From: Oopsacas minuta
Taxonomy: Eukaryota > Animalia > Porifera
Reading direction: 5' to 3'
Assembly (NCBI GenBank): GCA_024704765.1
Contig: JAKMXF010000365.1
Span: forward strand, 744,001-808,000
DNA length: 64,000 bases
Shown here: positions 19,701-57,984 of the stretch, one piece after another
How the letters are laid out: the number at the start of each line of letters is the position of its first letter
Position numbering within the stretch: the stretch's first letter is position 1
Made by a program: the position numbers and the translations under genes
The notes under the pieces: generated by a model
Told to the model about the DNA's origin: nothing
The model's database searches: none
Seen by the model: the letters and a program-made list of their open reading frames with translations, nothing else

Positions 19701-22700
19701 TGTACGAGAATATCATCACATACCTTCAATAAAAGAGTGTTGAGTGATTATATTGCTGACTAGATTCAGAAGATATATCGTGTTAGCATTCCATGCAACC
19801 AAGTGATCACTAGGGAGAATATTAAATTATTAATATAATTACAGATTTCCTGTTGCTAATAAAGATTTGAATTAAAAGAAAGTCAGCCATCGATTGCTAA
19901 CTCACATGTACTAACTTGATAACTCTTATCCTCTTGAAGATGTTGGGGATATTCTGATCTCCTGGCGTCTCCTCTTCAGGTCTCTCTGATCTCCTCTGAC
20001 CATATATGGGAGTGATTTTAACTCCATTGAGAAGATCCTTGAGTTTATATGTAAGCACTACTTTACCATCAAGAGATGCCTACAAGAACATGTTAGTACA
20101 TAATATTATACTAATACAGCATAAAGGAATATTATTATTATTATTATTATTCTTATTATTAGTATTAACCTTCCATATCCTAGCTTTAGGACGAGCAGAC
20201 AGTATCAGAGTATGATTAGGAATTGATTGTGTGTCTCGGTAGAAACAAGCACCAAATAAACCATCTCTACAAAACATAGATCATACAAAATGTGCAAAAT
20301 TAAAGACTGATTTCTATGTTCTAAGAGCATTCAGTATATGACTTAATTTTCAAATCAAAATTATATTCGGGGAATCAAAACGAACCTTTCTTGAGAGCCA
20401 ACATAAGTCACCTCCTCTCTAGAACGATGAATGTTAAAAATACGTATTATACTTTTGTAGCATAAACGTAATTGGAAAATACCTTTTCAGATTCATTATA
20501 GCAGATTTGTGCTTGCAAGAAACTAACAAATGATCATTGTCATAATCCTACGGAATGCAAAAAAAGAAATAATTTCTTATTCTTGAATTGACTAGGATAG
20601 GCCTAATCCCTTCTTCATTAAATAAAAGTTAGAACGCAACAATCATCAAATAACTGAAAAGATGAATTACGAATATACTAAGAAAGTGCTATTAATACTG
20701 GCTCTAATCTTCATGATTTCAGCTCCATTAGCTAAAGGACAAGATGAAGAGGAAGATACAAGTGGATTTATCGCAGAGCTGAGAGATGAAGACTTTGACT
20801 TGGTTATAACAAGATACAAGACACGAATAATATTAATAACATTAAGCTCTCTGTTAATTTGCTATGTATGCTGTGCAGCAGTATGTTTCTTACCTAGCAT
20901 TAGCGTAATGGTATGTGGATGTAGAGTTATGGCAGATGAAGTAGGAAGCAAGACGAAATGTACTAGAGAACCTGATAACAATGCTGTAGTGGTTATAGAG
21001 AGGAGAGGAGACGTAGAGATGTGTAGGACTGAACAAGTACAATTACCAGTGATAGAACATGGACCACAACCAAGAATAAACCCATATCATAATACAGCAA
21101 TGGTTAATTCTGGAAATGTGCAACCATACTTAACATTCACACAGGAGAAAGTTAATGTAAATAGGAAAATGTCTGATGGAAGGCAATCGATTGACTATAG
21201 CAGAGACGGTATTTCTGTTGATGAGATTGGAATTGAGAACACTAAAAGGTACAACTTTCTTTCCATGGATGATTTGAACAAGATAGAGAAGAGAGCTAAA
21301 GAGTACAGTCTGAAGCGAGTAGAGATGGGAGAAAGTAAAGTATGAAATCGTACGAGATGAAGATTACAAAGATGTAATTGGTAATTATATATATATATTT
21401 ATGTATTCGAAAAAGTACTGAGAATTCAAAACTTATTGTTTTTCTAATTGATTAAAATTATGAGTGATATTCAATTGTAATTATTTGAGCAGAAACAACT
21501 GTAAGTGGTGTATATGCTGAAATATATATATATATATATATATATACAAGCCAAAGGCTCGTCGCTTCGCGATGAACTCGAAGCATTGCGCCTCGGGTAT
21601 CCATTATTCCCCTGAATGACGGCCCCCCTGTGAGTATTATAATACTACTCAAAGGGTATAATATATTATAAAACAATGTAATCCACAAATATACGTATAT
21701 GGCATAAATATTTTGAATTATTGTAAGATCAACCCTCGTTGTAGCCGTTGAGAGCAAGTGTCTACGTAAATTTGGAGATTTTGCTAATTTGTTTACTTTA
21801 TATTCATAAAGACAACAATAAATTTACATATGATTAACTTGAAAATAAGAAAATCGGACCTCAGCATGTTTGATATATTTATTGAAGTTTGTTGAATTCC
21901 ACGTATTTACTTCTTTTTGTTAAACACGATAAATATACACCGTTATATGAGAATTTCAAAATTGCATACGGTAAATCCTTTCGTTGACAACGGACAAACG
22001 AACAATAATTGAGACTTAATAATATTGATATATCTAACTCTAGTCTCAAGACCAGCGGTTCGCAACCCTTTTCACCAGTTTTAACACATTCGGGCGACCC
22101 CCTCATTAACCGCAATACAAATTTGAGACCGTGTGACCCCCTGCTGTCGTGCGTGAACCGCCAAGGGGTCAATGGACCCCAGGTTTGGAATCGCTGCACT
22201 AGTCACTAGACCAATGCATAATTAGTTCTGCAAATACATATATGAAGCAAAATACTTCAAGAGAAATTCACCGATTCAGTAATTCTATATTAACACCATC
22301 CAAGAGAAGTTAATTGCAGTAACTATTGAATATACCGCTTTAACATGAGTGAATTAGGCTGTAGGCTGTAGCAACATTTAAATACTCGATATAATTATTA
22401 AAGTTATTACAATTCCAGCTATGTTTAAGATATACAACTTAGTATTTATTACGTGTATTCTGTTTGTGTTTTATTCACCAAATATCACTGAAGGACTATA
22501 TAGTCAAGGAGGAGATACTAATCAGCTGACTGAATTACCCAACAAACTTGAGAAAAGATCGGAATTAGGAGAGAGAAATCAAACAGAACCTAAAGATATT
22601 CCAGAGGAAGAATTAGAAAGAGATGTGATTATATCTGTGCTGATTGTGGCATTTATCATCCCTGTAATATTTGGTGGAATTATGTTGCTTTGTAGACTTA

Positions 22701-24495: not shown

Positions 24496-24650
24496 TTCAT
24501 TATATCTGCAAGACAAATAGCATAACAACCAAACAGGGTCAATGAAATTTACCAAGAAAATTATGCAGTACGGATAATATCAGGCTTATATATTAAACAA
24601 ATTTCTATTGTAAAATAACGAATACAGTATATTTAGTTGCTCGTTTGCAT

Positions 24651-25532
24651 TTAATTTCCGGAATATACAGGTGTCCTCTTCTCTTTAAAAGCTTTCAATC
24701 CCTCTATTCTATCGTTGGTTGGAATAACCTGTGCATAACAAGCCTCCTCAATCTTCAGCCCTGTAGTCAGGTCTGTTTGCATACCAGCGTTAATAGCTTG
24801 TTTAGCCAGCTTCACTGCTATAGGGCCATGTGGTATTATTTGGTTAGCAATATCTAATGCTTTCTGGAATGCTGCATCTCTCTTTTCATTTTGCTTAACT
24901 ACATACTGTGCTATACCAGCTTCATATGCTTCAGTCCCTGACAATACTTTAGCAGTGAAAATCAGTTCTTTTGCTTTAGCAGAGCCAATCAATCTCGGGA
25001 GTCTCTGGGTGCCTCCTCCCCCTGGAATAATAGCTAATCTTGTCTCTACCAGTCCTAGCCTAGCATCTGACGATGCAACCAGGAGATCACCCGCGAGAGC
25101 TATTTCTAGACCCCCTCCAAGAGCAGCTCCGTCTAGAGCGAAAATAACTGGTTTGTGAAGATTCTCAATTCTTTGTGAAGACATTCTAAACTGAGATACT
25201 AGTCCAGCTACTTTATCCTGAGGGATAGTAAGACGCTCCTTCAGATCAGCTCCAGCACAGAATATCCCTGGCACAAGAGAGCGGAATATGACAGCTCTTA
25301 CCTTACCCTCATCATGCTCAAGATCTGACAGAATTGCAGTCAGTCTAGATATCAGCCCAATACTAAGAGAGTTCTTTGCTTCAGGCCGATTAAACCCAAT
25401 AATAGCAATCTTACTCTCTGTTATAGTAAGCTCTATCTCTGTGCCAACACCTGTAGTAGAGGAGTAGAAGGGATATGAGTTAACAAGACCTCTGAGAGAT
25501 GTACTGATAAGCCTACGGAATGATAACATCAT
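24651..25532 (-). CDS. AUH: Methylglutaconyl-CoA hydratase (crotonase family), mitochondrial, intronless
   Basis: Basic targeting-like N-terminus, NRPEAKNSLS, GIFCAGADLKER, ALGGGLEIALAGD, GLVETRLAIIPGGGGTQRLPRL, YAQVIPTNDRIEGLKAFKEKR. Confidence 0.95.
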   Translation of the reverse strand: MMLSFRRLISTSLRGLVNSYPFYSSTTGVGTEIELTITESKIAIIGFNRPEAKNSLSIGLISRLTAILSDLEHDEGKVRAVIFRSLVPGIFCAGADLKERLTIPQDKVAGLVSQFRMSSQRIENLHKPVIFALDGAALGGGLEIALAGDLLVASSDARLGLVETRLAIIPGGGGTQRLPRLIGSAKAKELIFTAKVLSGTEAYEAGIAQYVVKQNEKRDAAFQKALDIANQIIPHGPIAVKLAKQAINAGMQTDLTTGLKIEEACYAQVIPTNDRIEGLKAFKEKRTPVYSGN

Positions 25533-25817
25533 TGTAGTAGTAGTAGATAAAAGCTATAGGAACACTGTATTTTGAAATCGAATTTGGACTGTACTTGTAA
25601 GTAATTTTAAGATTTGAATGTTGTATCCGAATTTCACACGATAAAACGCCGTAAATCAGGCTATGTGTACATATACGAGGTAGTTATCAAGTTAATACTT
25701 GTATTTCACTCTTTCACATGGAAATAAAACTGTCATAACGAGTAATTATAAAATAATGAAACAAACAACAAAATTAATAAGAGAATTAAGAAATAATTCA
25801 ATAACTCAGAAAATAGT

Positions 25818-29005
<3,188 letters not shown>

Positions 29006-29358
29006 TCAATATTATAAATGTCAGAGGCACACAGTCAGCAGAAGGGGACCCCCTCTCTTACCAGCGCAGGGTAAATACTCAGCTTGTATGCAAAATTGTC
29101 CGATGAGCAACAAAAAATAAGTCCCTTAGATGGACAAGGGACATAGTTCTGTTGCTATGCAATGTTGGTACTTACCCAAGTTTGGTAAAATGCATTATAA
29201 ATTGTAGTTAATAGTAAATTTATTATAATTAAATAATAGAAATGAAAAATCAACAAATAAGAGAGAAAAGTGGGAATATTAAATTAGTTAAAAAGTAAAT
29301 ATCAAAATAGAAAGTTTAATCAACTCAAAAAGTACTTTAGAAAGCTATTAGTAGTAGC

Positions 29359-32300
29359 TCATTGGAAGCTGAAGTCTTTGCTAATGGCTTCTTGAACAGT
29401 TTGATGGCAGTACACATACTGTTTTAACGAGCTCACCATATGAGGACGCTGTACACGAAGTCCTTTCACTGTTTGAAATATATCAACCACTCCTTCATAA
29501 GCCACCTGCTCAAGTATCATATATATTGACAAGAAGGTACCAGTACGTCCCATACCATCATTACAATGCACAATAGTAGGTTTATCCATACCAATAGAAC
29601 GCTGTAGTCTATATGTATGTATAACCAGCTGTATAATATCACTATGTTGAGGCAGTGAACCTGCTACTGACCAGTTAGGTAAGCTCAGCTGATAAACTTT
29701 CTGCTTCTGAGTACCTGAACTAACCAAGTACTCACGTTGTCTGAATGGTCCTAGCTCAAGTTCATCCACAAATGATACCTGTAGATTCTTTATAGTTAGC
29801 ATTTCAGTGCTAGTAGGCCAGTAGTGAGCACACATCTCCTTACCATCCTCGTACAGATTAGTTAGCATTACGATTAATGACGCATTGGATGATACTACCA
29901 TTGACCAGAATTGAGGTACTGTGTGTTCAAGAGGGCCCTGTGTAGCTATGAAAGCACGTCTCTGCATAAAGCTATCTATATAGCTAGCATTTATATAATC
30001 AGATGTCTCTCCAGTTAGCCTAATGTCAAGGGAAACTCTGAAAAGGTTGTTAGGGAGCTTGTCTTCATATCTGTTCTTTGGAAGGTTGACAGGGTGTTTG
30101 GCATCTGACACCTGTTCAGGAGTAGGGTCAGGACAAGCTTGTACTAAAGAGTCAAAGAGTTCCTTGTAGTGGTTGGAAGTAGTATCCACAGACCGGTTCA
30201 TGAAACTGTAAAATAAGTTGTAAATTCGTGTAAGTAAGAAGTTAGTGAGTGTTGTCGTTGAGTATTTACCAAAGTGGGGTGCAGAGTCTTGCAAATGCTT
30301 GCCGGACACCCCACTTTGGGAGGTTGTACTGTACCGTTATTACCAACTCGAATATAAATGGCCATTAATATCGTATTATCGAATTATGTAAAACTGGTAA
30401 AACGGAAGTTGACTGAAATTCAAATATGTCTAAGAAAGTTGAAATAATTATGTTATCAAGTTATACGTATTTCTGAAAACTTACTTGCAAGTGAGAGAGA
30501 AGTTTTGCTTCTGTATGCTGGTATCAGTACGGTTAACTTGATCCAGTAATGCTCTGTAGATGAAGCAGTATTGCTCAGCAGTAGAAATGAAGTTTGTTCT
30601 TTCTGCTCTTAAACGTTGTATCAATTCAAACACGTTCAACTCACTAGGTTCAAGCTTTATCAGTTCTAGCCACAATTCGAATAAAACTAGGAACAATCCG
30701 CATTGATCAGATCCATCGGGGCAGTGTAGAAGGAGAGGTGGATAAGGTTCAGAACTTGCTGTATGATGTCTATATTAAGAAATATTAATTAGAAAATCTA
30801 GTTTCTTATAACTTCAATTAATAAATCCAAATCCAATGCATTCAATCACTATATGTATTAATCAACGAGTAAATTACATAAAACAAGTCTAATAAAATTA
30901 CCTGTGAACTTTGGTAATGAACTGCCATAAGAAGTGTGGATGTAACGGCAGAGAGTTCTGAGGCCAAATAGTAAAATGGAGCTGAGTTACTATACGTTTA
31001 CTAGTACCAGTACCAGGAGAAGTTACAGTAAAATTCCTCTGAATAAGATGCCCAAATATTTGAGAACTATCATGTGTAACTTGAATATTATCAAATTCAG
31101 CTGTCTCTCCCGCATCGGGCCAGTATATTTCACAAGTGGAAGCACAAGGTTCGGGACTCAGCATAACTATAACAGTACTACCTTGTTGCCATACCATCTG
31201 CCAGAAGGAATTAATTGTAGCAGACAATGGGCCCTGTGTAGTGATATATGAAAATGTCAACCAATCCTGATCAATTAAGCTAGCATTAATGTAATAGGAG
31301 TCTTCCAGACGGACACGATTGCAATCATATGGACATATATTGGGTTGTCTAAAAGATAATAGATAAATCAATATTCATAGGACAAGCCACAGTACTACTT
31401 AGCTAACATAATGACTAAATAACTGACTTAAATTTCGGGTTTACTAATTAACCGATAAGTAAGCAGAAATAGTTATGAATATAGATATCGATAAAGCTTA
31501 ATTAATAGCACAAGTATGATAAATCTGAGTCTGGATAGTACACGGAAATCATAATGCACAATGGGAGATATTATCCAATGAACATTTTAACAGATAACTT
31601 AGAAAGAAGTAACACACAACAACGATCGATTAATGCTAATTACACATTCTAGATGTAACGATAATATTTTCAATGTAGTTAGTGGAATTAGTATGAAGAT
31701 TCAAACAATGCACGATACATTATTAACTGACACATACCTATTCTTCTTCTTATTCTCAGGTAGTAGTCCCACTGTGGCCTCTCGTAATAGGCCTCTACGT
31801 AGGTCAGCAAACTCCTCTTTAGCCAACTGACAGTTATTATATAAGTGTTGATCCAGACAAGGTTTGAGATGACGTAGAGGTATCTTACTGTTACGTATAC
31901 GATCTTCTGTTAGCTCACCGACAGCTTGTTCGCGGCCTTCATCACTGGTGTGACTGTGAGATCTGTTATAGATGCAAAAGTTAGTAAATATAAACTAGTA
32001 ATGTCAATATGTCAACTATATCTCTTACCTATTGTCAGATATCCCTGAATCCCTCTCTGTTTCGTATAGAGAGAGGCGGGGAGGAGTTATCTTGATGGTC
32101 CTCTTTGGTGGAGTCAGCTGGAATTCTCCTCCTGCATTCTTAGAAGCTTTCCTGCTTCTAGATCGTCCCCTGAATAGAGCTACCATTAGACAGCATATTA
32201 TCACCAGAGCAAAGTAGATGAGTACAGCCAGTAGGATTATGAGGATGAGGGGGAGTTTTATGAGCAGACTATCTTCAACATGAGCTAAGAAATAATCTGA

Positions 32301-42900: not shown

Positions 42901-43333
42901 ACAACAAATCAAAGTAGACAGGAGTAGAAGAACGTTCGAGGTCATCAGGTAGTTCGGTTGGTCCACTTAGCTCTGGGTCTGACTCACTTCTATTGATAAA
43001 ATTCATGTTTACAACTACTCCACTCCGATTATAAAAACTGGTTGAAGTAGTCAAGAGGTTTTTCCGTAAGTCTTCTGAGCTTTTAGATAATGTCTTTGAA
43101 AAACCTTCAGTACGATCTAATCTCAAATTCAAGATAGCTCGTTCCATGCGTGTCACGTGACCAGGCAGCGTGATACCCATTACCCCCAGGGTCCGTCGTG
43201 TGAGTCCTTGACATTGACTCAGGGATGTGAGACCGTTATGTTTGAAAACAGGAGCGTATTGAGGCAACTTCAAACACTGAAGCCATCTGTCGACCTCGCT
43301 AGTGGACAATTTATTAGCTGGGCGAGTACTCAT
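36915..43333 (-). CDS. ARAP1: ARAP: SAM, PH domains, ArfGAP, ankyrin, RhoGAP, RA and PH
   Basis: N-terminal SAM (VDRWLQCLKLPQY..ITLPGHVTRM), PH (EGWLFKQGG..WKKRWF), ArfGAP zinc finger (CADC..WVSLNLCVMVCIECSGVHR), RhoGAP (IGLYRVSG, MGVPNLALVFGP) and RA domain. Paralogue ARAP1/2/3 not resolvable. Confidence 0.92.
40385..40460. mobile_element. GC-rich relic resembling the end of a hAT/Tip100-type element, in an ARAP intron
   Basis: CACTGCCCAATCCTCC followed by repeated CCCG/CTCCCG subterminal-like motifs and a CTCCCG...CGGGAG stem. The opposite end was not found. Confidence 0.3.
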
Positions 43334-43515
43334 ATTGAATGCTATACATTTATATTGTACATAGTATTTGAAATAATTCTGAAAATATCTTCTAAATATA
43401 GTGTTTCGAGATGGAAATGAGAATTAGATAAACCACATTGCAGGTTAGATCAGATTACATTATTACAAAACTGTTGCTTGCAGTATATTCCAAGATTATA
43501 TGCTATAGTCTTACT

Positions 43516-43999
43516 CAGGGCCGGATTAGCAGCCTATTTGGCCTGGAGCTGAATAATTTTGATGGGCCTAGGTAGACCCATCAAAATTATTAGGCCGCCT
43601 ACCCCTACCTTACAATTCTATAAATAACAAAACAACTTTCATGTATTTGCTTAGAAGATATAATTTAATACAAGAAAGCATCAAGTAGTGATTATTGACA
43701 AATTTAATCTCACAATGATAACATAGACTATTGATTAACAAACAAAATTAATATAACAATGTTGAGTCATAAACACATCTACATTAATCATTGCCGTTCT
43801 CAAAAAATAGTCAACTTAGCCTGCTATGAGAATTCGCCATGGATCAACTTAAAGCCTTCTTATGAAATCTGGGCGCTTCTAGGGTCAACAAAACTAACTC
43901 TTGGCTGTCTACACGGCCTATGGCACCAACGAGGTGGGCCTATTTTTACGATGTGCCTGGGGCTGCAGCCCCATCCGCCCCCGCCTTAATCCGGCCCTG
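43516..43999. mobile_element. Intact non-autonomous hAT element (484 bp), about 180 nt upstream of the ARAP start
   Basis: Terminal inverted repeats CAGGGCCGGATTA and TAATCCGGCCCTG, flanked by a perfect 8-bp duplication GTCTTACT (43508-43515 and 44000-44007). Confidence 0.92.
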
Positions 44000-44752
44000 G
44001 TCTTACTAATCAAATAAGATTAGCTGAGAGTAGGTGTAATCATTATATTATCAATATTATCATTTGTGCGGATGTGTAGATTGCAAATTTTCGTATTTTA
44101 TCCTAAAAATACGGCAAAACATTTTATTGCAACTAAGCAATTTGATCGTGAATGTGGTCTTAGTATAATTAATATACCTATAACTTCTAACTTTGTAATT
44201 GTTTCATAAATTATGAATGACTTTTACAGCACATAAAATATGGCTTTTACAGCCAAATAAGATTTTGTGAGTTAAGAAACGAAGTAGAAGGTCGTATTCT
44301 ACATTTATTGAACTTCATTTCTTGAATAATTCTGAATAAGGAGTTGAAGATAGTAGTAGTTATACAATTACGCAAATAGCTACAGGACAATTTGTGCTTT
44401 AGGTGCGATATTGACGTAATTCAATTTTCAATGATGACACAGATGCCATAAGTTAGGATATTGGACCTTGTGCCCCCAAACTACAACATCATTTACAGCA
44501 TGCAATAAATACATTGCGCTACTCATTTATATGAGGCAGGTCAGGCCTGGTATGACCTAACTAACCACACATGATGCAACTTTGTACAATAATTTAGAAA
44601 TAGAACAGGTATATTTTTGACAACACTGTCACACGAATAATCACGTAGACTATCTTCGTATTGAATATGTTTAACTCAAGTGAAAATATATGAAATATCA
44701 ATAAGATGTGGGTAAACTGTTAAAATCTCCAATAATGATAATTATTCCTGAA

Positions 44753-47700
44753 CTAGCTATACTCTGGCTTGAGTTTCCATAGGCCAGATCCACTGATCTT
44801 ATTAAAATTACAAATTTGTTTGAGAATAGCTTTAAATAGAGCTGATTGATTGTCAGGCAAATAAGAGAATCTAGTGAGTATCTCATCAGTGCTAGCCTGT
44901 CCCGGACACTTGGCTTGGAAGCTCACAAATGCTCTCAAATCTCTTGTGAGCTCTTCTGTATCTCTATCTAACATATCCATGGTGACAGAGCTCTCTTGTC
45001 CATTTCTACGTCTGATAGAAGCTAGTATTTCTGAAGAAGATGGAGCAGTAGTAGTATCTAATATAGTCTCTCTACCAGAGAATACTCCGAGTAGATTAGT
45101 GAGGCCTCGTGTTGTCTCATCACTTCCCCTTGTTACTAGTAGAGGCACGCCTCCTCTCTGACCTGTCCAAGTAGGAACACTTACTGGTTGATTTACTAAC
45201 CTCTCTCTAGCTAACTTGATTGCTAGAGCAGCAGCTTTAGCCTTCTGTTGAGCATTCTCTCTCACCAATATACACTCTCTTTCCGTAGAGTCTTCTAACA
45301 GATCGTGACGTATTGTCTGGTCTACTGAACAGCGGTTAAGTAACTCTCTTAACAGTATATTATCCTGTGTAACCGGGTCTATGCCTGTATCAGCTGGTTG
45401 ATAGGGTGTATTAGTGTCTACTCCATGGATCTGATGTCCGTCTATCTCTGTTGAGGATAGCGGGATTGATTTATGTTGCTTCTTTCGCCTCTTCTTAGGT
45501 GTAGCTGCTTTATCTACTTTCATTGGAGAAGGATTTGGAGTATCTTTCTTATTTTCATCCTCCACAATAACTATATAGTGATGTTAACATTAATATATTA
45601 CAGTGGAGTTCGCCAATTAGCAAGTCGTATTTGCAGGAATTTTCCATGCTATTGTGCGGACTTGCTATTAAAAGAATTAGTATTTGAATTTATTTACAGT
45701 ATGAAATAGACTGAAAAAACTTGCTATTATGTGAATATTATTAAAAGGCGAACACCATATTCATATTTGCCATCCATTTAGGGATATGACTTATGATACA
45801 GGGAAAATATTGGAAAGTTCTGGGTTTTTTCATAAATTTGAATATAAATAACAAATCCAGGAATTTGGTGGAAAACAGTTAAGAGTTGGTAAGTATGCAT
45901 ATTATATATCATACAGTAGTGCGTGAACTGAGTAGTATTATAATTAATTAGTATACCCTGGTTAGCTGTATCCAAATCATCCTGAGTAATAACCCAGTTA
46001 TCAGTATCAGCTGATTCTGATCTCAGAGATAGGGTAGGAAGAAGAGGAGAGGCATATGATACAGGGTGTAAAGGTGTAGATACTACTCCTGGAGGAGCAG
46101 TGTGTTTGATAAGTGCTGGTGTCTCAGCTTGTGGTGTATCAGTGAATGTGAACAATTCATGAATATCACTGTATGTGAATATCCTACTTTGTTTTGGATC
46201 TTTCAGAACTCTAACACAGAATATAATTAATGTCTTAATTAATTATAAACAGTGGAATACCTTTACCTGTTAGTTAAATATTGTTTGAATATTTGTCTCT
46301 GATACATCTTCTCTTCTATTGTTCCACTTGTCACCAGTCTGAATACAGAGACTTCTCTCTCCTGTCCGAAGCGCCATGCCCTCTCACGTGCCTGATGGTC
46401 TGTACTTGGATTCCAATCAGGATCAAATATAATAACACGATTAGCTCCTGTTAGATTCAGCCCTAGACCTCCTACACGAGTAGTAAGCAAGAATACAAAC
46501 ACAGAGTTGTCTTCATTGAATTTATTCACTAGTTTAGCACGAGCACCTACACTAGTAGTACCATCCATCCTCAGATAGCAATATGACATATCTTGTATCA
46601 GCTGTTCTAATAAATCTAATGTTTGTCTGGTCTGTGAGAATATTAATACTCTATTTCGTTGAGAACTCCAGGCCTTGAGCAGCTCCCAGACTACTCGCAT
46701 CTTACCGGAGAGAGAGTAGTAACCAGATGGCGCAGGAGAGAGACTACCGTCTGTATCTGAGCTGGGCATTACAATGGCTCGGGACCTGATCTCTTGTATA
46801 TATTCACACATGTCCATCACAGCCATACTAATAATATCTCGTTAATAAACAACAACAAATAACAGACAATAATCTACCTTATAGCAGTCTCTCCCTCCCC
46901 TTTCTCATCCTGATTAACCCTGGTCCTGACTATAATATCAGGATGATTACAGATCTTCCTCATCACACATATAGCAACAAACAGATTGGTACCTCCTCTG
47001 TATCCCCTCTTAGCTTCCTCTGACTTAAGGTAACGTTTGTAGAGGATAGCTTGTAGTCGCGTGGGTCTACAGAATAATACTCTTTCTCTCTTCTCAGGTA
47101 GCTTCAACTCTCCGTCAACTTCTTGCTTGATTCTTCTCAGGAGATAAGGCTTGAGCGCATCTCTCAATACACAAGCACACTTATACGCTATTTGCACCTA
47201 AAGAGAGTAGCTTATACTGTATCGTATACAGAAGTTATTTAAATCAATTCTTGTTATATCGAACACGGGATATATTGAAATACCCGCTAACATCAAGTCT
47301 AAAATTGTACCAATACGGTTATGTTCCAAACAGTCAAAGTACATAATTTTCATCAGTTACATGGAACTCTAGCTTATCTTGGTCCCTTAAGCTTCAATAT
47401 AACGGGAGTTTACTGTAGTTCATTCTAACCTGTTCCTCAGAGGCCGATGCATAACCACCTTGAGTTATGGGATCAGCTAATGTGTCTAAGAATAAAGGTA
47501 GAGTACCCAGAGATCCGGGAGATACGAAATCCACCAGAGACCAGAGTTCTTTCAAACTATTCTGTATAGGACAACCGGAGAGAGCTAGCCTATGAGGAGT
47601 ACGGAGTTGTTTACAGACCTGAGTTATGTCTGCATCAGGATTCCTGATTTTATGAGCTTCATCTAAGATAGCATAGTGCCAATATACCTTTAGGATCAGA

Positions 47701-49034
47701 TTTACATACGTATAAAATAAAATACTGATTAACTCAAATAATGGACAATTATGCAGCTACTGGACAAAAGATAAATCATTTGAGATTAGTTACCAACCTG
47801 TAACAGTTGCTTCTTCATAATCCTGAGCATCTGATAACTAGTTACTACTACTACAGAGCTCAAATTAAGAGCTTGTTTTAGAGTAGCACTATGAGACATA
47901 CCACTGTCTCCAGCAGAGTGTAAAATAACAACACGGAGAGGTGGAGCCCATTCATGTAGCTCTGATACCCACTGACGTAACAGAGTAACAGGACATATAA
48001 CTATAGAGTGACCGAGACCTGCAAATTTGTGAGTTGTTCTGACATATCCTTCTGTTGTGTGTTGTACTTCATCAACCAGCTGACTGTTATGCAATGAATT
48101 GAGAAATACACTAACCTATAAACTCAATGCTAAAGAGCACTAATTAGATAATTATATTACAATATACAAGGTAAATACCTGTACAGTCTTCCCGAGTCCC
48201 ATTTCATCACCTAGAATTCCACCAGTTTTCTTCCTATGCAGAGACCATAGCCATGATATACCGTGTTTCTGATATCCAAGGAGACGAGACCAGACAGATT
48301 CAGGTACAGACAGTCCTCCTGGGAGCAGCTGATCACCAGTATCAGCACCTTCTATCTGTTCCATACGGGAGAGGTATACTTCATCAGTGACGTCATCGAT
48401 ATCAAGGCTTGAGTAGTGAAGTTTGGATTTTCTAAGCAAACACAATGCAACCTTGAATATACAAACACGACAACTCTGTATGTAATAATTATACTATTCT
48501 AACCTTTTTCTTCTTCCTGAGCTGTCATCCTCTCCAGAAGAATCTGAGGGAAGAGGAGAGATATCTCTTGGTCTAGGATATAGAGAGGTATGTCTGATAT
48601 TAGCTACATCCTTATCGGTTCGTGTAAGGTCAGACAGGAGTGGTAGACAGAGAGACTCTATATCTAAATATGAAATATGAAATACGGTTTAGAGTAGGTA
48701 AAAGCAGATATAAAATAATTCCTATACCTTCACTCTCTGAATTCTTCTCCCTACTGCTCCTATCTCTCTCAGCTGTAGAAGAGGATAGCTTATGTCTCTT
48801 GTTACGAAAACTGCTAGCATGTCTACGTAGCTGATCCTCCAGTTGATTGATAAGACTCTCTTCAAAAGTAGCTTGATCATATTCACATACTACTGAATGA
48901 GATAGAGAGTTGTCATTATTCAGTTGTGGTATTTGACTCCTGTCAACCTTAACTCTAGGTATCTTAAATCTGGGAGTTTTTGAAGATTCAGGTGGATCTT
49001 CAATCATATCACTCTCATGCTCTGAATTACTCAT
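44753..49034 (-). CDS. ERCC6: ERCC6 / CSB (Rad26) SNF2-family ATPase, multi-exon
   Basis: [93 protein letters not shown], and the CSB C-terminus [16 protein letters not shown]. Confidence 0.95.
47228..47415. mobile_element. Tc1/mariner-type MITE in an ERCC6 intron, same family as 61888-62060, opposite orientation
   Basis: The reverse complement begins TACAGTAAACTCCCGTTATATTGAAG and shares AAC.GATGAAA.TTATG.ACTTTGA with the PPM1 intron copy. The left end is degenerate. Confidence 0.6.
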
Positions 49035-49624
49035 ACCTCCTTATCTTGTGACAAGAATATGGTAGTATAAATAGTTGTGTGTATCTACATAGTTACAGGA
49101 CACAGTCTGCAAACCAAACTTCAGTTAATTTTATATTAGGCTACAGGTAATTAGTATTATGCAATGGAGTTAATTACAGAATTAGAATTATAGTGGATGA
49201 TTCTGAGAATTTTCAAGTAGCTGGGATATTGTAAATTTCTAAATAGTAATGATAGCAAAAGCAAGGCTATTTCATCGGTCCTAGCATAAGAGAAGTACTA
49301 TTTCCTATAAAAAGAGCAAATAGTTTGTAGCTGAGTTAGCAACGAGATCGTGAGAGTTAAGAGGCTTACAAATATCCGTAATGAATAGGTAACATGCTCC
49401 ACAACTGTTTCACTATAGCAATAATTACCTAATAATAACGAAACGACAAAATATATAATTAAAATAATTTAATAGAGAATATAAAAGCTTTGAAGCTTCA
49501 ATAGAACACAATTTCACAAAGAACAGGTCTCTTAATAAAGTACCAAACAGGCATATTGACTCATTATGGTGCAATGCTATAAACTCTATCTTCAAGTGAT
49601 AAGTATAAAAATAGAACTATCAAT

Positions 49625-52464
49625 TCAAACAGCTACGAAAGATTTGATAGGGTGTATTGGACATGCACTCGTGAGGTGTGCTAATACATCACAGAGAGGA
49701 CTGTGGGCATACTCTATTGCTCGTTTCCCATGTGTATCTTCTAACTGTGAGTCTATATGGTTCTAAGGAGGAGTTCAGTAAAACACTATACATTCTAGTC
49801 TCGTTATATCCTATATTATTAGCATCGATGTAATGTAAGCACGAGAAATTCAATAGTATAACCTCCACAAATAAGGTGCTAGGGACTCCTAAATGCTACC
49901 ACATTTCCCAGTTTCTGCCAAAATTCCCCGTTTGTGGAGATTCATTTGTATGGGGATAGGAATTCGCCATGATGTTTTAACACCGTTTCTAGAAGTTCCC
50001 CGATTCCACGGGCCCCGTTTGTAGAGGTTACAATGCATTTGATAGTAATATAACCGGGGCCTTTTAAACAGAGTCTACTATATATGTTGATACGTTTTAT
50101 TGTAGTTAGTACAGTAGCTTATTGAATAAGATTGTTACCCAAACAAGTAGCAAAGCAATGAGAGAGCTGTCAGCGATTACACTAGTGTGTAATACTGTCT
50201 GCTTATTAGTAGGATCTTGATAGTTAAGTACTTCTGGTGTACAGTACGGGAGGAGAGAGTATACATCTTGAAGATCACCTCTCTCAACTGATGAAATTAA
50301 CTTCTGCAAACGGTTAATAAATAAATATAATTTTGATTTGGATTAATTACTATTTTGCAAGACTTACTTCACGTAATAAATTGGTATCTTTGTAGACATT
50401 ACGTAAGAAAGCTCTCTCTTCATATTTTAATCTAATCCAAGTTTCTCTCACTTTTCTAACCAATCAAATTACGATATATAATATGGTGAGGCTATTGTCA
50501 CCGACTGGGACACTTCGTTTACAGGATATTGGTATTATGTAAGAACTTAAATACCTGGTGCAACAAGCGTAGTCAGGGGGAGCATAACCATTCAATTCGC
50601 TAGTAGCTTCCCATACACTTCTGGCTAGATTATTGCCGATTGAAGAAACGAGAGAAAGTTGCAGAATGCTAGAGCGTAAATGCAGTAATAATTTCTACCC
50701 TTCTAACTATCAAAATCAAATAGATTGATAGATAACTCACGTCCATTCATCAAGTTCTAGGGATTTTATTCTAGAGATATGAGTTCCTAGTTGTCTATGT
50801 ACAGAAGAGCAATGTACACAGATAACAGTTCCTAGATTGATACTCGCCCATTCAGGGTCTAAAAATTAAGCAATAAACAAAAGCAAAATCTTAATAATCA
50901 AATTATTGTAATTACTTACCAGGAGCTAGACAGTCACAGCATACATCATTTCCTTTCATATTTCTAATTGCTGCAACCTCTGAAGTACTGACGATTATAA
51001 ATGGACGGATCTAAGATAGATTTCAATAAGGAACAGGTTTAAGCCAATTATATGTTGAATAGAGTACAACGTTGTATCTGAGGATAACATAAGTGAAAAA
51101 TTTGTGTTAAATTCAGATAATAGTAACGATTAAATCAATAATACAAGAGAACGTATTTAATAATTCAACGACTGAATTACATAAAACAGCATTACACATA
51201 AGATGATACACATATGTTACGGAGTTTCTAGATTTATTTGTATAGGTTTAATCCATCTGGTGTTATAATACACACTCTCTCCAGCTCTCCAACCTGGCAC
51301 ATTCTTCATGATCTCCAACTCAGCATCTTCAAAGTTTTTCATCCCTCTGAGAGTATTTCTGTCATTTTCAGCTAGGAATAGAGGGTATAGCGCAATTCTA
51401 GCCTCTCTCATTTCTCTCCTGAACATTCTACGCTCTCTGTTCGTACGTATAACCAATACCCAACCGAAGGACATTATAATTAACGTGCCTAGTAGAAGCG
51501 TTAACCCTCCAGGTCCTCTCTTCCTAACAACCCTAGCAAACGGTATATCACTGTATCCACCCTTGGGAGCCATGTCCTGAACTCTGCGTGTTCTGTTCAG
51601 GAAGTCTGTCATTCTATGTGACAGCTAACTTGAAGTGAAAATATATCTGAAATAACTATGCTCAACACATTTACATAATAAATTCTACATTGTATTCGGG
51701 CAGATGATGCATCAACAATTCAACAAAAATAATATCATATTTACCCCTACAGATATTAATAATCAAAAAGCATAATAGAAGAAGTAACAAAGTATCGGCA
51801 AACAGTCAATATATACAAATAAAACACTCTAAAGATATCATATACTCTTAAAATATCGTTTCATATCAACTATCAACTCGTTAATACCATTACCAGATAC
51901 TGCAGAGATAGGATATACTCCACTCAATCTATCTTTTTGCTTCAATAATTGTGTAACGAATAACTTTTTCATTTCATCCTCAGATAGAGCTGTAGGCAGA
52001 TCTTGCTTATTAGCTAGAATTAATAATGGTATCTTGACAGAAATTATACTATCCAACAACTTTTCTAGCTCTAATTTAGACTCCTCGATTCTCTGAGTAT
52101 CACTACTATCCACAACATACAACACAGCATCTCCTCCTGTTATGCTACGAACCCATTGACCTCTGTACTCTGCTCTTCCACCAAAGTCTCTAACTGATAC
52201 ATTTAGAGATCCGGATAGAGAGAGAGATTCCACATTAAATAGAGCTGTAGGCTCTGTATGACCACAATCATTCGTTTTGATATAATTCAGAATAGAAGTT
52301 TTGCCAGCTTCATCTAGTCCGAATAACAGAAGTCTGAATGTACCATAGTTAGCTATTCTACGCTCTCTATGAGTCTCTAACGTACGGTTAATTACTCCGC
52401 CCATATATCCATTGCTTCTATATTTTTAGTTAAAGTACAAGCAATATTATAATAATGAATACAC

Positions 52465-52506
<42 letters not shown>

Positions 52507-55500
52507 GAATTATGAACAATCAATACTGAATTATCGGTTTGTAATAAGTACATAGAGTATTATACGTATGTGTAATATGATAAATAAAGCCACACTGATG
52601 AAATGAAATTACAAAATCCATCCACACGGGATCTCTTAACGCTAATGCGTAGAGTCAATAAAATAAACTATACATTCTTAAGCCATGACCTAGGAGCCTC
52701 TGATATTAATGTAGCATTTACTTTTATATAAATTATATCATTCTGCATGTAGCGAAACAAATAAGAGGATTGTCTGATTTGTGAATGAGATTTGAATTGT
52801 ATGAGAGAAGGATTAACAACCTCTTCAGTTCCTATTACCTCTAACTCAGTCTCTACCACATGATGTAGAGTATTACTCAGCTGATTCAGGAGAGATATCT
52901 GTAGTTTGAGTTGAAGAGGTGTGTCTATAGAATTATCAGAGAAACACACCACCAGCGATATGAATGAGGTATAATTCTCATCTAATCCATCGCAATACAT
53001 CTTCAAACGGAACTCCATACCATTGTTCGTATAAATACAAGGACTGACTACAATAGCACCAGACTCCATCTTAGTACTGATACCAGATATCTGCCATATG
53101 TAAGGAGATCTGTTGGCTACGCTAGACATCATTTCCTCTAACGCATAAATACGTCTCTCAAGTCTTTCTACTTCAGTTCTATGTGTCTCTTCAATCACCT
53201 CTGTGTGTATGTTGAGATGCTCTAAATGAGCTTGTATATCAGTAGATAGGTGGCAAGGCATCTCTCTACGAGAACACTCATGCTCACAGCCGTACCTCTG
53301 GTACTTACAAGGAAGTACTGACAGAGGGCAGAAGTCTTCTAAATGCCGTTTCATCTTACGACGCTCAACTGTCAAAGTTTGACAGTTATTCGGACAAGGA
53401 GTAGGGAACATATTACACCTAGTGCTCCAATGCTTATCCATCTCTCCCAGACACACCTCTCCTGTACAATACTTACACCCTACTTTCCTCATAAGACACT
53501 GCTTAGTTGTGTGTGAGTCTACTTCACATCTCATTACTACAGCCCCACAGCCTTGCGAGCATTTTATCCTGAACATCTGACAGGCAGTATTCAAGTGTCG
53601 TTTGCAATCTCCTAACTCTCCATTCCATTCACAGCCTTTAGCTTTCAGTGGACATTGAATTCTCTTCTGACGTACCCATCTATTGATGAAGTCTTCTTCT
53701 GTGATTTTATCCATACTAAGTGGGATGTTGTCCAGTGGACATCTGGTCTCTGTATGTTGACTATAGAACTTAGCTTGATAAAGACATACTTTACAGAACA
53801 CGTGACCACATGGAGTAAGGAGAGCATCCTTGAGAACACCCTTACATATATGACAGAGGAAAAAGTCTTCTACCATTTCATCAAATATATCAGGATTATA
53901 TCCACCAGATATGTTCCCTACTCTAACTGAGAGTAAGACAGAAGGAATGTCTATGTCCCAGGTAGTCAGGGGGAGAGGATTCAACTCTAGTTTGAGCTGA
54001 CGTAACTCAGGAGATCCAGAACCAGCCATATACTTGTAATGCAAAGAATGACTAGCTGTATAATATCGACGTATTCTGATTGATTCGTAAGAAATGGGTA
54101 ATTAATAAAGAGAGGGTATACTAATCTATATGGTAGTTACAGCTACAGACAGTTAATCAATTTCTATCATTCTTGTAATTATATATCTAGCTCTAATTGT
54201 TATGTGATAGTATAAGTTAATTAGCATACCATCTGATGACAAACTCAGTATAACATAACAATGGATCATAAGTGTTGCTAGGTAGATTTGAATTGGTTAT
54301 TAGTATGTGAAAATATGGATGTGAGAACTCCCATAAGTATCAATCTATTCATATGACAAACAGCAAATATATATGTAAAGCTCGTATAATCCCTCTACCG
54401 AGAAGAGCTGGTGAATAGATAACAATATAAATCAGTCAATGGTCTCGCTATAACCGCAGTTATTAACCGATCACGGCTGAAGTTTTACCAATTCCCGCAG
54501 CAAGAACGATTTTAGCACCTTTTTGACGTCATAACATTTTACCGGAAGTATTCGGTTAATGACTAACTTATTGGGATATATTGAGTTACTAATTGTAAAA
54601 ACAACTAACCGCTTTCCTGTCTCCAGTTGTAGCAATAAGAGCTGCATGTATCTGCTGTTCAATTACTTTTATCCAATTTTCTTGCTCCTAAGAATACTTA
54701 AATATTTAAATATTCTAATACAGAAACTGTTAATATACCCAACTATTATCGGTTTTAAGCCATAAACAGTCGCATCAGTAGGTAGGTACATGTATACCTT
54801 ACCTCAGAAGATCCTGCATCAAACACCCAATATCTTCCATCCAAAGAAATAACATGAAACTCAAATGTAGCTATGTTATCTACAAGATATAGGTTACTAT
54901 TAACAGTTAACAACATTAATTAATTCAGTAATAACTGTAATGACTATACCTGTAGCAGCAGGGACTAAGAACTTCTGAAGAGTAGCATCACTCTTTCCTC
55001 GTACATGTCCGCTCTTGAGATAAGTCTGTATCTTTTTTGGAGTCTTTTTCTTATCAGCTGGCATTTCAACACTAGAGTAGAATATACCAGGGATATCTTC
55101 TTCTGGGTCAGAGGAAGTTTCTTTCCCTGTAGCACTACTATAATATTACAGAAATAAATTTTGATGTTCATTGGTATAATATGTGTACAATTCTACCTTT
55201 TGGAAAGTTTGTTCGTGAGTGAATCATCTATTGGACTATTTGGAATGTTTGTAAAGAGAGGGTTGATAACACTTGTAGGTTTAGAGAACACAGCACTAGC
55301 TGAGAAGAAATCTTCTTCATCTGACATATCTGTTAACATTCCATCTGACATAAACTGTAATATTTAAAAAATAAATATAATTACAGCCAAAATAAATTAT
55401 ATTATATTACCCCAATATTGTGATCCTGGTCATCATTCTTGTTCCTCTTTCTGCCTGTGGTCTCGGTTATACTATGCATTCTGAGAGCACGTGGAAATGT

Positions 55501-57984
55501 TTGAGCATTCTTGATAGAAGTGCTAAGATTAGAGCGAGTTACACCAGTAGGATCCTTTCCCGGTATCTTGACGGTACAGTGTAGCAGGTTTATAGATTTA
55601 CCATTAATCTGGTTCATATAATCCTACAAAGACATAATAGTATAATCTATTGGAGAATTTTAGCAATACATCTCTTAAGAAATCATGTGAGTTATAATTA
55701 GTTTTGAATTTATTAATTAGTAAACTAACTAACGTGTGTAGTTGGGTAGTAAGTGAGTGTATTCTGTGTGAGAACTAGTAATTTCTTCTTCCAGTCCTTC
55801 TTCCGTTTATTACCACGTTTCAATATCTTACTCTATAAATATTATATAAATATTGCTCTACTCAACATACTAAACTAGACTTACCTCTTTAATAGGAATA
55901 TCTCTTCCTGTTCCTAGCAGTGGAACACCGTTTGAAATTTCATAATTAGATTTCATCTAAACAATAGGAAACACACATTATAAAGCCAGAAATGTTCAAG
56001 ATATGTATTATGGATTCTAAGGTAGACTCAGTATAAGAAGAGGGCCAAATGAATATTTTAATACGTTTAACACCTATTTTAACAAAACAACAAACAACAT
56101 GTCAACAACCTCTCATCATGTTATACATTATTCCAGCACATGGAATTTTCGCTAAAAATATTCAAACTAGGTTCAGATAGTCAGCCTATTATATTCTTAA
56201 AACAAAACATTATTAAAGATTCTACTCTTTGTCTGAAGCAGCCATTGCTTTAATTATTACCATATATATTTATAAGCATAGTAGCAGAGACATGTTTGAG
56301 TACGTGTTGAAAATCTTCTATGCTTATCCTTTTACGTATGATATATATCTACATATTCAACTGGCCTGATAAAACTTCTTGTTAACTTTCTTCCTCTTGA
56401 TAACTTGAGAGGAAGTACTCTCATGACTAGAAGGTAGACTAGACTGTCTCATTAGCTTGTAAGGTAATTGTCCATTCTCATCACTAGTTATCTCATCTAG
56501 GCGAGTGTTAACACTTGTACTCTTCTTAGTTCTGCTAAAATTGTATGTCATGTGTGAGAAGAGAATGGGTTTACAAGCTATACAACAGATACAGAGAACG
56601 TCAAATCAAGCCTATAATATAAATCTAATTACGTTATACGTTACATTACGCCAAATTATGGAAATTTAAATGTAAATCAGTGTTGACGCAATAATTTAAA
56701 GGAACAGAAGTAACAGACAGTAACTGTCATTATCAAACTATAAGTATGAGTGGATATATAACTAAGGATTCCAGGATATCAATTTTAATAATTATGAGAG
56801 TTAATATGCTTACCTCGATGGAAAGAAGATTCTACATTAATTCCATTCGCTGGGGTAACTTCTATGTAAGGAGAGTTATTCATGTGATTAGTAGCTAGAC
56901 TGATGGCCTCTGAGTGTGTAACACATCGCTGTAGAGAACTATCTGAATACAGTGATAAGATATAACAAATTCATAATCAGCTGATAATCATGACGTAAAT
57001 ATAGTGTTACCTTGTATTCCGATAAGGACAGTTGGAATGAGGCCCAGTCCTCGTCTAGATCTATACTCTAGCACCTGCCGATATGATGTGTAGATAGAGA
57101 TAAAACTTTCCATGTTCTCTAAACTGAACACAAACATCATTGTATCTGCCCAGATTGCTACCTAATGCGAGCTAGTAAACATAATAGAAAATGGGATAAA
57201 TGTTGTGTAAGCGTTACCTGTGTGGATGGTTCACCTGATATTTCCCGTATAAGCAATAGTTGGTTCTTACCCTCCATATAGACATCTTTCTTATGACGAA
57301 TTTCTAGAAATGTATATGAAGTATTCTACAGAAATTATAGTCTTAGTAAAGTTACTGACCTACTTCATCAGGTATTTCAACATCTAACGTCCCATAGAGA
57401 TATTTATTCACTAACAGAGACTTTCGAGATTCAACAGTACCTAATATTACCTGAAAATAACAGAATGAAGTGAATACAGCTGATATAAGATAATCTGTAA
57501 GATATCAATGTAACCAACCTACCAATCGTACGTCGTTCATAGTTCTACAGCTGTTCCATTCAGGTGTCAGCTTCAGATGCTCTAAAGAATAACATATACG
57601 TAGTTATGTTGCAGTGTATTTGTTGTTGTTAGAAGTTTGGATTTCTGCTAAAGTGATTATAACAGCTCAGAAATTGGTCTATGAGGCCAGTTTTGTACAA
57701 AATTCTGAGGCTACCTCTCCCCTTCCAAATATGATTATAAGAATTCGAAAGTAAATACAATAATCATGAATAATATTTCTTAGAAGGGATAAGGAAATAA
57801 TCAAAAACGTAAACTAGCATGCATTGAGAGTACCTTCCATTCTATCCAGTTCTTTGAGTATTTGAATATTGTCCTGCGGAGAAACAGAGTATAGTTTGGT
57901 CTCAATCAAACATCGTGTCTCCTTCCATTGATTGATAAGAGCATAGAAGTTCTCCACCTCTTGTCTAGCTGCTGTCTGGCACAT
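49625..57984 (-). CDS. AGAP1: AGAP / centaurin-gamma: GTPase-like domain, split PH, ArfGAP, ankyrin; about 18 short exons, mostly absent from the ORF track; hosts three same-strand genes
   Basis: Exons read on the minus strand: [13 protein letters not shown] (57984), [16 protein letters not shown]|[114 protein letters not shown]|[67 protein letters not shown], ankyrin ..LLLVW. Paralogue number is nominal. Confidence 0.9.
51217..51612 (-). CDS. NDUFA13: NADH dehydrogenase 1 alpha subunit 13 (GRIM-19), intronless, same-strand nested in AGAP intron 54609-51011
   Basis: [50 protein letters not shown]. Confidence 0.95.
   Translation of the reverse strand: MTDFLNRTRRVQDMAPKGGYSDIPFARVVRKRGPGGLTLLLGTLIIMSFGWVLVIRTNRERRMFRREMREARIALYPLFLAENDRNTLRGMKNFEDAELEIMKNVPGWRAGESVYYNTRWIKPIQINLETP
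51838..52404 (-). CDS. Divergent Arf-like small GTPase, intronless, same-strand nested in the AGAP intron
   Basis: MG myristoylation-type start, [49 protein letters not shown]3 reads RDFGGR instead of WDVGGQ. Confidence 0.9.
   Translation of the reverse strand: MGGVINRTLETHRERRIANYGTFRLLLFGLDEAGKTSILNYIKTNDCGHTEPTALFNVESLSLSGSLNVSVRDFGGRAEYRGQWVRSITGGDAVLYVVDSSDTQRIEESKLELEKLLDSIISVKIPLLILANKQDLPTALSEDEMKKLFVTQLLKQKDRLSGVYPISAVSGNGINELIVDMKRYFKSI
52466..52503. repeat. (CA)n microsatellite between the nested TRAF-like and ARL-like genes
   Basis: About 19 consecutive CA units read directly. Confidence 0.95.
52668..54029 (-). CDS. TRAF-family protein (RING, TRAF zinc fingers, coiled coil, MATH), intronless, same-strand nested in the AGAP intron
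   Basis: RING ([20 protein letters not shown]), TRAF zinc fingers ([36 protein letters not shown]), MATH ([18 protein letters not shown]). First ATG is at 54029. Confidence 0.9.
   Translation of the reverse strand: MAGSGSPELRQLKLELNPLPLTTWDIDIPSVLLSVRVGNISGGYNPDIFDEMVEDFFLCHICKGVLKDALLTPCGHVFCKVCLYQAKFYSQHTETRCPLDNIPLSMDKITEEDFINRWVRQKRIQCPLKAKGCEWNGELGDCKRHLNTACQMFRIKCSQGCGAVVMRCEVDSHTTKQCLMRKVGCKYCTGEVCLGEMDKHWSTRCNMFPTPCPNNCQTLTVERRKMKRHLEDFCPLSVLPCKYQRYGCEHECSRREMPCHLSTDIQAHLEHLNIHTEVIEETHRTEVERLERRIYALEEMMSSVANRSPYIWQISGISTKMESGAIVVSPCIYTNNGMEFRLKMYCDGLDENYTSFISLVVCFSDNSIDTPLQLKLQISLLNQLSNTLHHVVETELEVIGTEEVVNPSLIQFKSHSQIRQSSYLFRYMQNDIIYIKVNATLISEAPRSWLKNV

Follow-up and report, generated by a model that had tools for sequence, protein, structure and literature searches.

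Three genes on the host strand of an AGAP intron in the glass sponge Oopsacas minuta: a conserved cassette with features of a spliced-leader operon

Genes nested in an intron on the strand of their host are expected to disturb it, since the host transcript has to run through their 3′ ends and acceptors. The present analysis concerns such an arrangement in the glass sponge Oopsacas minuta; within a 64,000-nucleotide stretch of its genome (hereafter the window), one intron of an AGAP-like ArfGAP gene holds three genes, here called the cassette, which encode a TRAF-like protein, an Arf-like GTPase and NDUFA13. The minus strand of the window corresponds to contig JAKMXF010000365.1 at about 785-806 kb, JAKMXF being the whole-genome project for O. 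minuta (PMC10280926). The cholinergic locus is a closely comparable system, in which VAChT/unc-17 lies inside the first intron of ChAT/cha-1 on the same strand, the transcripts overlap and the output is set by alternative RNA processing. The AGAP locus shares with it the conserved nesting on one strand and transcripts that overlap those of the host. The cholinergic locus, however, has a single guest with a shared 5′ exon and a shared function, whereas here three functionally unrelated genes are found, the leader is added in trans and the intron lies in the middle of the coding sequence. A second comparison is offered by operons resolved by a spliced leader (SL). According to the outron rule of nematodes, a 3′ splice site that lacks a paired upstream donor is trans-spliced. 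In nematode and tunicate operons (C. elegans SL2; PMC7986045, PMC1657053), co-oriented genes lie about 100-260 nt apart and the downstream genes receive the leader at an AG near the ATG, and both features recur in the cassette. It differs from them in that the array lies inside a same-strand intron, the host acceptor is shared between cis- and trans-splicing, no SL2-type leader was distinguished and the polycistronic precursor is presumed.

Nested genes have been surveyed in other animals. In Drosophila, 71% of nested genes were found to be antisense and 29% to lie on the host strand, and 72.5% of the same-strand ones are single-exon genes (Lee and Chang 2013, PMC3814207). All three genes of the cassette are likewise single-exon, which fits selection against mis-splicing with the host; Drosophila has no leader trans-splicing, whereas nested genes here carry functional acceptors. 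The genome of the hexactinellid Aphrocallistes vastus was reported to contain 2,432 nested single-exon genes, many of them conserved (Francis et al. 2023, PMC10282587). In the same paper it was stated that the O. minuta annotation misses nested genes (83 were counted) for technical reasons and merges them into host models. The AGAP locus agrees with that description in its single-exon guests, in the compact hexactinellid genome and in the merged annotation. The A. vastus paper is silent on strand, multi-gene cassettes and RNA processing, whereas here three host-strand genes come with evidence of cis-splicing and of leader addition. An earlier reading of the window made from the DNA letters alone (the sequence-only reading) had treated nesting of this sort as exceptional; in view of the A. 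vastus count this does not hold for glass sponges, and the locus is a well-documented example of an architecture found throughout the genome and no isolated curiosity. The hexactinellid spliced leader has been published (PMC10282587, PMC7986045), that of A. vastus being roughly 37 nt long (figure S4 of PMC10282587). Operons are unreported in hexactinellids (PMC7986045), and the O. minuta genome paper makes no mention of nested genes, leader trans-splicing or operons (PMC10280926). What is new here is the RNA evidence for the host junction, the use of the leader within the intron, the cis and trans use of one acceptor and the conserved three-gene cassette. The locus is a compact test case for the coexistence of leader trans-splicing with nesting and for operon-like units in sponges.

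Four sequencing runs bear on the locus. X1 and X3 are DNA-type runs with flat depth and long colinear contigs, broken only at a (GT)n microsatellite, and X5 is a DNA-like run from an organism about 94% identical, with the same gene order. X4 is a single RNA-type run available as assembled contigs, which are undirected and whose depths are whole-contig means. Taken with the comparison of other assemblies, these data point to a conserved same-strand nesting in which the cassette on balance probably acts as a small operon resolved by a spliced leader, one that overlaps the transcription unit of the host. The features concerned are as follows (positions in the window).

49625..57984, minus strand: host AGAP-like gene (GTPase-like domain, split PH, ArfGAP, ankyrin); start according to the NCBI model, stop codon 49627-49625
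54610..54687, minus strand: last PH exon of the host (26 aa), ending ...GDRKA; X4 joints 54687/54803 and 54610/51010; donor GT at 54609-54608
51011..54609, minus strand: host intron with the three-gene cassette, GT..AG, 3,599 nt; X4 joint skipping 3599; donor GTTAGT starts at 54609
50920..51012, minus strand: host acceptor AG (51012-51011) and first ArfGAP exon (51010-50920); cis use from 54610, trans use by the leader
52668..54029, minus strand: TRAF6-like gene, 453 aa, intronless; RING, zf-TRAF (E 4e-20), MATH
51838..52404, minus strand: Arf-like GTPase gene, 188 aa, intronless; Arf, E 5e-38
51217..51612, minus strand: NDUFA13/GRIM-19 gene, 131 aa, intronless; most abundant RNA of the locus
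52456..52514, no strand: (GT)n microsatellite between TRAF and the Arf-like gene; a break point of contigs in all runs

The host is a true member of the AGAP (centaurin-gamma) family of ArfGAPs, with the order GTPase-like domain, split PH, ArfGAP and ankyrin. Searched exon by exon against Pfam, it gives ArfGap at E 5e-17 (exon 50743-50856, domain positions 24-61) and PH at E 2e-3 (55728-55832), and of the NCBI models the upstream one carries Ras and PH and the downstream one ArfGap. GLD-like, split-PH and ANK-like segments are readable in the translated host exons. These segments are judged to resemble those of human AGAP1. Since the ArfGap match begins at domain position 24, the first third of the domain is placed in exon 51010-50920, partly upstream of Met 50959. 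The host frame stays open across all junctions supported by RNA and extends from the PH region, by way of ArfGAP and the ankyrin-like sequence, to the stop at 49625; the acceptor sequence ...TCTATCTTAG ends at 51011, and the first ArfGAP exon reads IRPF...NDVCCDC from 51010.

The three guests are uninterrupted intronless open reading frames, arranged head to tail on the host strand wholly inside the 3,599-nt intron, and all are covered by X4 RNA contigs. The distance from the host donor to the TRAF ATG is 580 nt, and the following spacers measure 263, 225 and 206 nt. The closest solved relative of the TRAF-like protein is TRAF6, and its 25 N-terminal residues are conserved. The Arf-like GTPase begins with MGG and has ARL3 among its closest solved relatives (E 2e-27). 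NDUFA13 matches PF06212 over residues 11-125 (E 7.5e-36, 123 bits against a curated cut-off of 25) and is 48% identical to the named homologues of Trichoplax and Oscarella.

The host splices across all three genes. In X4, ten GT..AG joints were found on the minus strand, none of which is present in X1 or X3. Nine of them remove short host introns of 56-376 nt, as against 3,599 nt for the cassette intron, and have contig depths of 890-1,120 (930-1,070 upstream of the cassette intron, 890-1,120 downstream). The tenth joins 54610 to 51010 (GT..AG, skipping 3599) at a contig depth of 544.8 (about 545) and is absent from the colinear X1 and X3. The sequence-only reading had placed the donor at 54609, the acceptor at 51011 with the frame resuming there, and three same-strand intronless genes between them; all of these coordinates hold, and the junction it had predicted is the one found in the RNA-type run.

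An assembly artefact, in which the cassette would have been misplaced between two halves of AGAP, carries practically no probability and is refuted. The only contig break, at (GT)n 52456-52514, is flanked on both sides by X1 and X3 contigs colinear with the window, the X5 organism is colinear too, and an identical order is found in four independent long-contig assemblies.

RNA from within the intron is also continuous with host and guest sequences. X4 contig 23 (834 nt, depth 407) is colinear over 53806-54639 and links the PH exon with the TRAF coding sequence by way of the unspliced donor and the 580-nt spacer. X4 contig 19 (320 nt, depth 279), likewise colinear (51628-51947), connects the Arf-like coding sequence across the spacer with the NDUFA13 acceptors; its end at 51628 lies exactly 30 nt below the branch at 51658, as is to be expected in a 31-mer graph if genomic and leader paths merge at 51657. 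At the host donor, the spliced (545) and unspliced (407) depths together roughly equal that of the upstream exon junctions (930-1,070). These whole-contig means suggest that a large minority of PH-exon RNAs run on into the intron. Across the locus, X4 depth is roughly 21,000-30,000 for NDUFA13, 1,430-1,500 for the 3′ half of TRAF, 1,200-1,400 for the Arf-like gene, about 900-1,000 for the host exons and 280-410 for the spacers.

Such data bear directly on the public annotation, which is wrong at the AGAP locus of O. minuta, consisting of a chimeric AGAP-N/TRAF and a truncated ArfGAP.

L001 3629-8945 and 10654-11988: NCBI models within window positions 49625-57984, contradicted by the 54610 to 51010 junction and by conservation

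The chimera (1,042 aa) combines the GLD-PH half of AGAP with the nested TRAF, and the second model, a 220-aa 'ArfGap', starts from the internal Met 50959. If these models were followed, AGAP would be a split gene, producing a GLD-PH-TRAF fusion of 1,042 aa and a leader-capped ArfGAP-ANK protein of 220 aa from Met 50959, with the long junction a minor form. This is very unlikely, even though it agrees with the NCBI models, contig 23 is unbroken from the PH exon into TRAF and the leader junction at 51011 is followed by an ATG after 52 nt. The 54610 to 51010 joint reaches a depth above half of that of the neighbouring host junctions, no X4 joint links the host donor to TRAF, and a stop is met after 6 codons when the donor is read through. 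Moreover, the host donor and acceptor are conserved in position and phase, and four other assemblies have Val in place of Met 50959; the residues preceding it, by contrast, are conserved and lie within the ArfGap domain. Conservation therefore does not extend to an ArfGAP-ANK protein standing on its own, and for the RNA that carries the leader at 51011 a by-product is the likelier reading. A full-length GLD-PH-ArfGAP-ANK mRNA is already indicated as a major isoform. The same annotation error probably recurs at many similar loci, affecting gene counts and surveys of domain architecture.

The use of the leader within the intron rests on the loose ends of the X4 contigs and on the following sites.

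51647..51657, minus strand: two spliced-leader acceptors of NDUFA13, AG 51657-51656 and AG 51648-51647, 43 and 34 nt upstream of the ATG
52418..52419, minus strand: AG 13 nt before the Arf-like start codon, where the leader is probably joined (X4 contig end and conservation)

A common non-genomic leader is trans-spliced onto NDUFA13 and onto the host acceptor 51011. One leader, ...TCTTCATAAAAAA(A)CTTAC(AG), with A6 and A7 variants, was found at three X4 loose ends, each exactly at an AG; given as reverse complements, these are TCTTCATAAAAAAACTTAC (51657), CTTCATAAAAAACTTA (51649) and AAAAAACTTAC (51012). The loose ends share 11-19 nt, at most 19 nt of the leader are visible, and its last AG coincides with the genomic AG. 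A search of the 64 kb window that tolerated as many as 3 mismatches revealed neither a copy of the leader nor a 5′ exon for it; thus, the leader comes from elsewhere and not from a local exon. The leader end at the host acceptor is the same as that at NDUFA13, and one acceptor is therefore used both in cis, from 54610, and in trans. This use of the host's own acceptor had been overlooked in the sequence-only reading. Among the X4 contigs, from which rare forms are dropped, no cis-splice from the host donor to a guest acceptor was found, though the guest acceptors are functional.

For the Arf-like gene, a leader junction at AG 52419 is probable. X4 contig 20, which covers the 5′ end of the gene at a depth of 1,161, matches the window up to position 52419, beyond which it has 3 non-genomic letters, and ATAG/A (TTAG/A in L005, one of the assemblies compared below) stands 10-18 nt before the ATG in five of five assemblies. 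The nearness of an AG to each start codon had been an argument of the sequence-only reading, which counted 3, 13 and 1 nt. All three are literally present, and the 13-nt one, at the Arf-like gene, is conserved and coincides with an RNA end; those at 1 nt (NDUFA13) and 3 nt (TRAF) are neither seen in RNA nor conserved. Because an AG stands no more than 13 nt away from 63% of the ATGs in the window, its closeness to an ATG is not significant alone.

The comparison with other assemblies started from a search with NDUFA13, which returned five proteins 73-76% identical on long contigs. The loci of four were taken, three as L002-L004 and the fourth as L005-L007, and P0006 was left out. The flanks of the cassette were placed by mapping the O. 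minuta host peptide, which showed TRAF to be directly preceded by the last PH exon and GRIM-19 to be directly followed by the first ArfGAP exon. The arrangement proved to be syntenic; the cassette lies in the same AGAP intron, in the same order and on the same strand, in four other glass-sponge-like assemblies (L002-L005), with introns of 3,069-4,115 nt. The donor GCG/GTnnGT and the acceptor yAG/ATCCG are kept in all four. Orthologues of the nested genes are 68-79% identical, and pairwise identities resolve three lineages about 75% identical in protein. Acceptor-like motifs before the Arf-like and GRIM-19 ATGs are conserved. Spacers are shorter still in L002 and L005, where 126-139 nt separate the Arf-like gene from GRIM-19 and 117 nt separate GRIM-19 from the host acceptor. 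In every fetched locus, PP2C and a small gene have the opposite orientation to the genes after them, which lie on one strand in the order TRAF, Arf-like, GRIM-19, SNF2 helicase of the ERCC6 type and ARAP-like.

Two properties by which operons are recognized are thus found: co-oriented genes with short intercistronic regions (about 100-300 nt), and trans-splicing of the downstream genes, which is seen for NDUFA13 and for the host exon behind the cassette and is indicated for the Arf-like gene. Under the operon model, RNA polymerase would cross the entire cassette, starting from the host promoter or from a promoter in conserved blocks upstream of TRAF, and the Arf-like and NDUFA13 cistrons would be freed by 3′-end cleavage and leader trans-splicing. 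The RNA past NDUFA13 would have an acceptor and no paired donor; by the outron rule it would be trans-spliced at the next acceptor, which is that of the host, giving a leader-ArfGAP-ANK by-product. Full-length AGAP mRNA would come only from transcripts that escape processing inside the intron, so that host and guests would compete on overlapping transcripts. An origin of the nested RNAs from the host pre-mRNA, by way of a presumed polycistronic precursor, may be considered; the contigs that bear on it are the two that bridge the PH exon and TRAF, and the Arf-like gene and the NDUFA13 acceptors.

Several points weigh against this model. The depth of NDUFA13 RNA exceeds that of the host exons about 20- to 30-fold and that of Arf-like RNA about 20-fold, which is easier to account for with an independent or internal promoter. 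A contig that spans two genes does not prove a single molecule, and leader trans-splicing alone does not prove a polycistronic origin from host pre-mRNA. For TRAF, no leader was seen among the X4 loose ends listed; its ATG has no conserved AG within 70 nt, and none at all in L003 and L004. In addition, the region before TRAF contains conserved non-coding sequence.

54093..54282, minus strand: conserved non-coding blocks, candidate promoter or 5′ end region of TRAF (four-sequence alignment and motif scan), 65-250 nt upstream of the TRAF ATG

The blocks are CCTAGCAAC at 54282-54274, GATGGTATGCTAAT at 54233-54220 and TTAATTACCCATT at 54105-54093, and they are conserved though the proteins are only about 75% identical; judged from this alignment, they may be TRAF's own promoter. 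A reading of CCTAGCAAC as an RFX X-box was dropped, as it comprises a half-site only. The earlier expectation of a common leader on all three nested mRNAs is accordingly to be narrowed to NDUFA13, where it is joined 34 and 43 nt upstream, and probably the Arf-like gene. The wider proposal of an operon in an intron is retained in so far as leader trans-splicing, overlapping transcription and conservation speak for it; the origin from host pre-mRNA remains presumed in it, and TRAF may have its own promoter.

The same observations lend some credit to ordinary nested genes with a separate promoter each, a reading of rather low probability in which the leader only trims a short outron and the spacer RNA consists of 3′ UTR, read-through and unspliced host pre-mRNA. 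Separate promoters would explain the unequal depths (about 1,450 for TRAF, 1,200 for the Arf-like gene and 21,000-30,000 for NDUFA13, against about 950 for the host) and would suit the blocks upstream of TRAF, and hexactinellid operons are unreported (PMC7986045). Spacers of 117-139 nt in L002 and L005, however, are too short to hold a 3′ end and a separate promoter comfortably, and leave little room for a polyadenylation site, a promoter and an outron together. Furthermore, the leader on host acceptor 51011 implies that donor-less RNA from inside the intron reaches the host exon, and RNA contigs are continuous across the spacers. The operon model, in which such RNA is expected, was retained as the preferred one.

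A further step can be proposed tentatively, and is rather doubtful: an intronic spliced-leader operon could set the output of the host. Each cleavage or trans-splicing event in the intron would then destroy a potential AGAP mRNA, and 51011 would switch between cis use, giving full AGAP, and trans use, giving an RNA for ArfGAP-ANK only. If this were true, leader trans-splicing could be what makes widespread same-strand nesting tolerable in glass sponges, and the cassette would be the first operon-type unit documented in Porifera.

Other candidate signals were sought in the intron. A long-range duplex between the 5′ and 3′ ends of the intron, which would loop out the cassette, was rejected, as in 4 of 5 assemblies its energy did not surpass that of shuffled sequences (z = -0.3, -3.1, 0.3, 0.1, 1.6). 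AATAAA and ATTAAA signals are almost absent from the spacers in all five assemblies; hence, 3′ ends are not placeable from sequence. A search of the intron and host gene for RNA families and tRNAs returned two sub-threshold chance matches and no tRNA, and a scan for bacterial promoters and terminators, irrelevant for O. minuta, stayed at chance level.

Some minor observations concern the nested genes themselves. Within the TRAF coding sequence, the summed X4 depth drops from about 1,600 at 53790 to 407 at 53835, beside a contig break that is also present in the DNA run X3. The drop lies near AG 53830-53829; a junction there, which would leave the first AUG out of frame, a variant and a graph artefact are equally possible causes. 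In the Arf-like GTPase, DFGGR replaces DxGGQ, so that the protein is without the catalytic glutamine; the same is true in L005. With an Arf-family gene nested in an ArfGAP gene, a functional link is conceivable from the protein families involved. If the leader joins at AG 52419/18, the 5′ UTR of the Arf-like mRNA (region 52405-52419) would contain an out-of-frame upstream ATG at 52412-52410 (MDIWAE*) that overlaps the main start; this ATG is peculiar to O. minuta among the five assemblies. Upstream of the NDUFA13 start stands CTGTCA, whose reverse complement TGACAG occurs in codons 1-3, so that the start codon lies in a small palindrome (51606-51624); upstream of the start, CTGTCA is conserved as non-coding AG/TTAGCTGTCA in L002-L005. 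At L005 10112-10114, and also in L006 and L007, the GRIM-19 start position is ACG and not ATG, and the next Met, 13 codons on, is the start called in L004.

Two repeats were noted in host introns, the first of them inside the cassette intron.

54461..54538, no strand: dispersed repeat copy inside the cassette intron, containing the palindrome TGACGTCA; about 7-fold depth excess in the DNA-type run X1, loose ends on both sides

A variant of this copy that skips 45 nt (54488/54534) is present in all four runs, and no convincing counterpart was found in three other aligned sequences, L002 having only gaps there. The second repeat is a 45-nt element with inverted copies, 84% complementary, at 49922-49966 and 27528-27572, which show a many-fold excess of depth and divergent flanks in all runs. 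The copy at 49922-49966 sits in the 376-nt last intron of AGAP and resembles a dispersed short repeat (MITE-like). Over 43333-57984 of the window, the minus strand carries AGAP, its three guests, the ERCC6/CSB-type SNF2 helicase (49034..44753) and the ARAP-like gene (43333..), in an order constant across the assemblies examined, and this block from AGAP to the ARAP-like gene is bounded upstream by a divergent 137-aa gene and PP2C.

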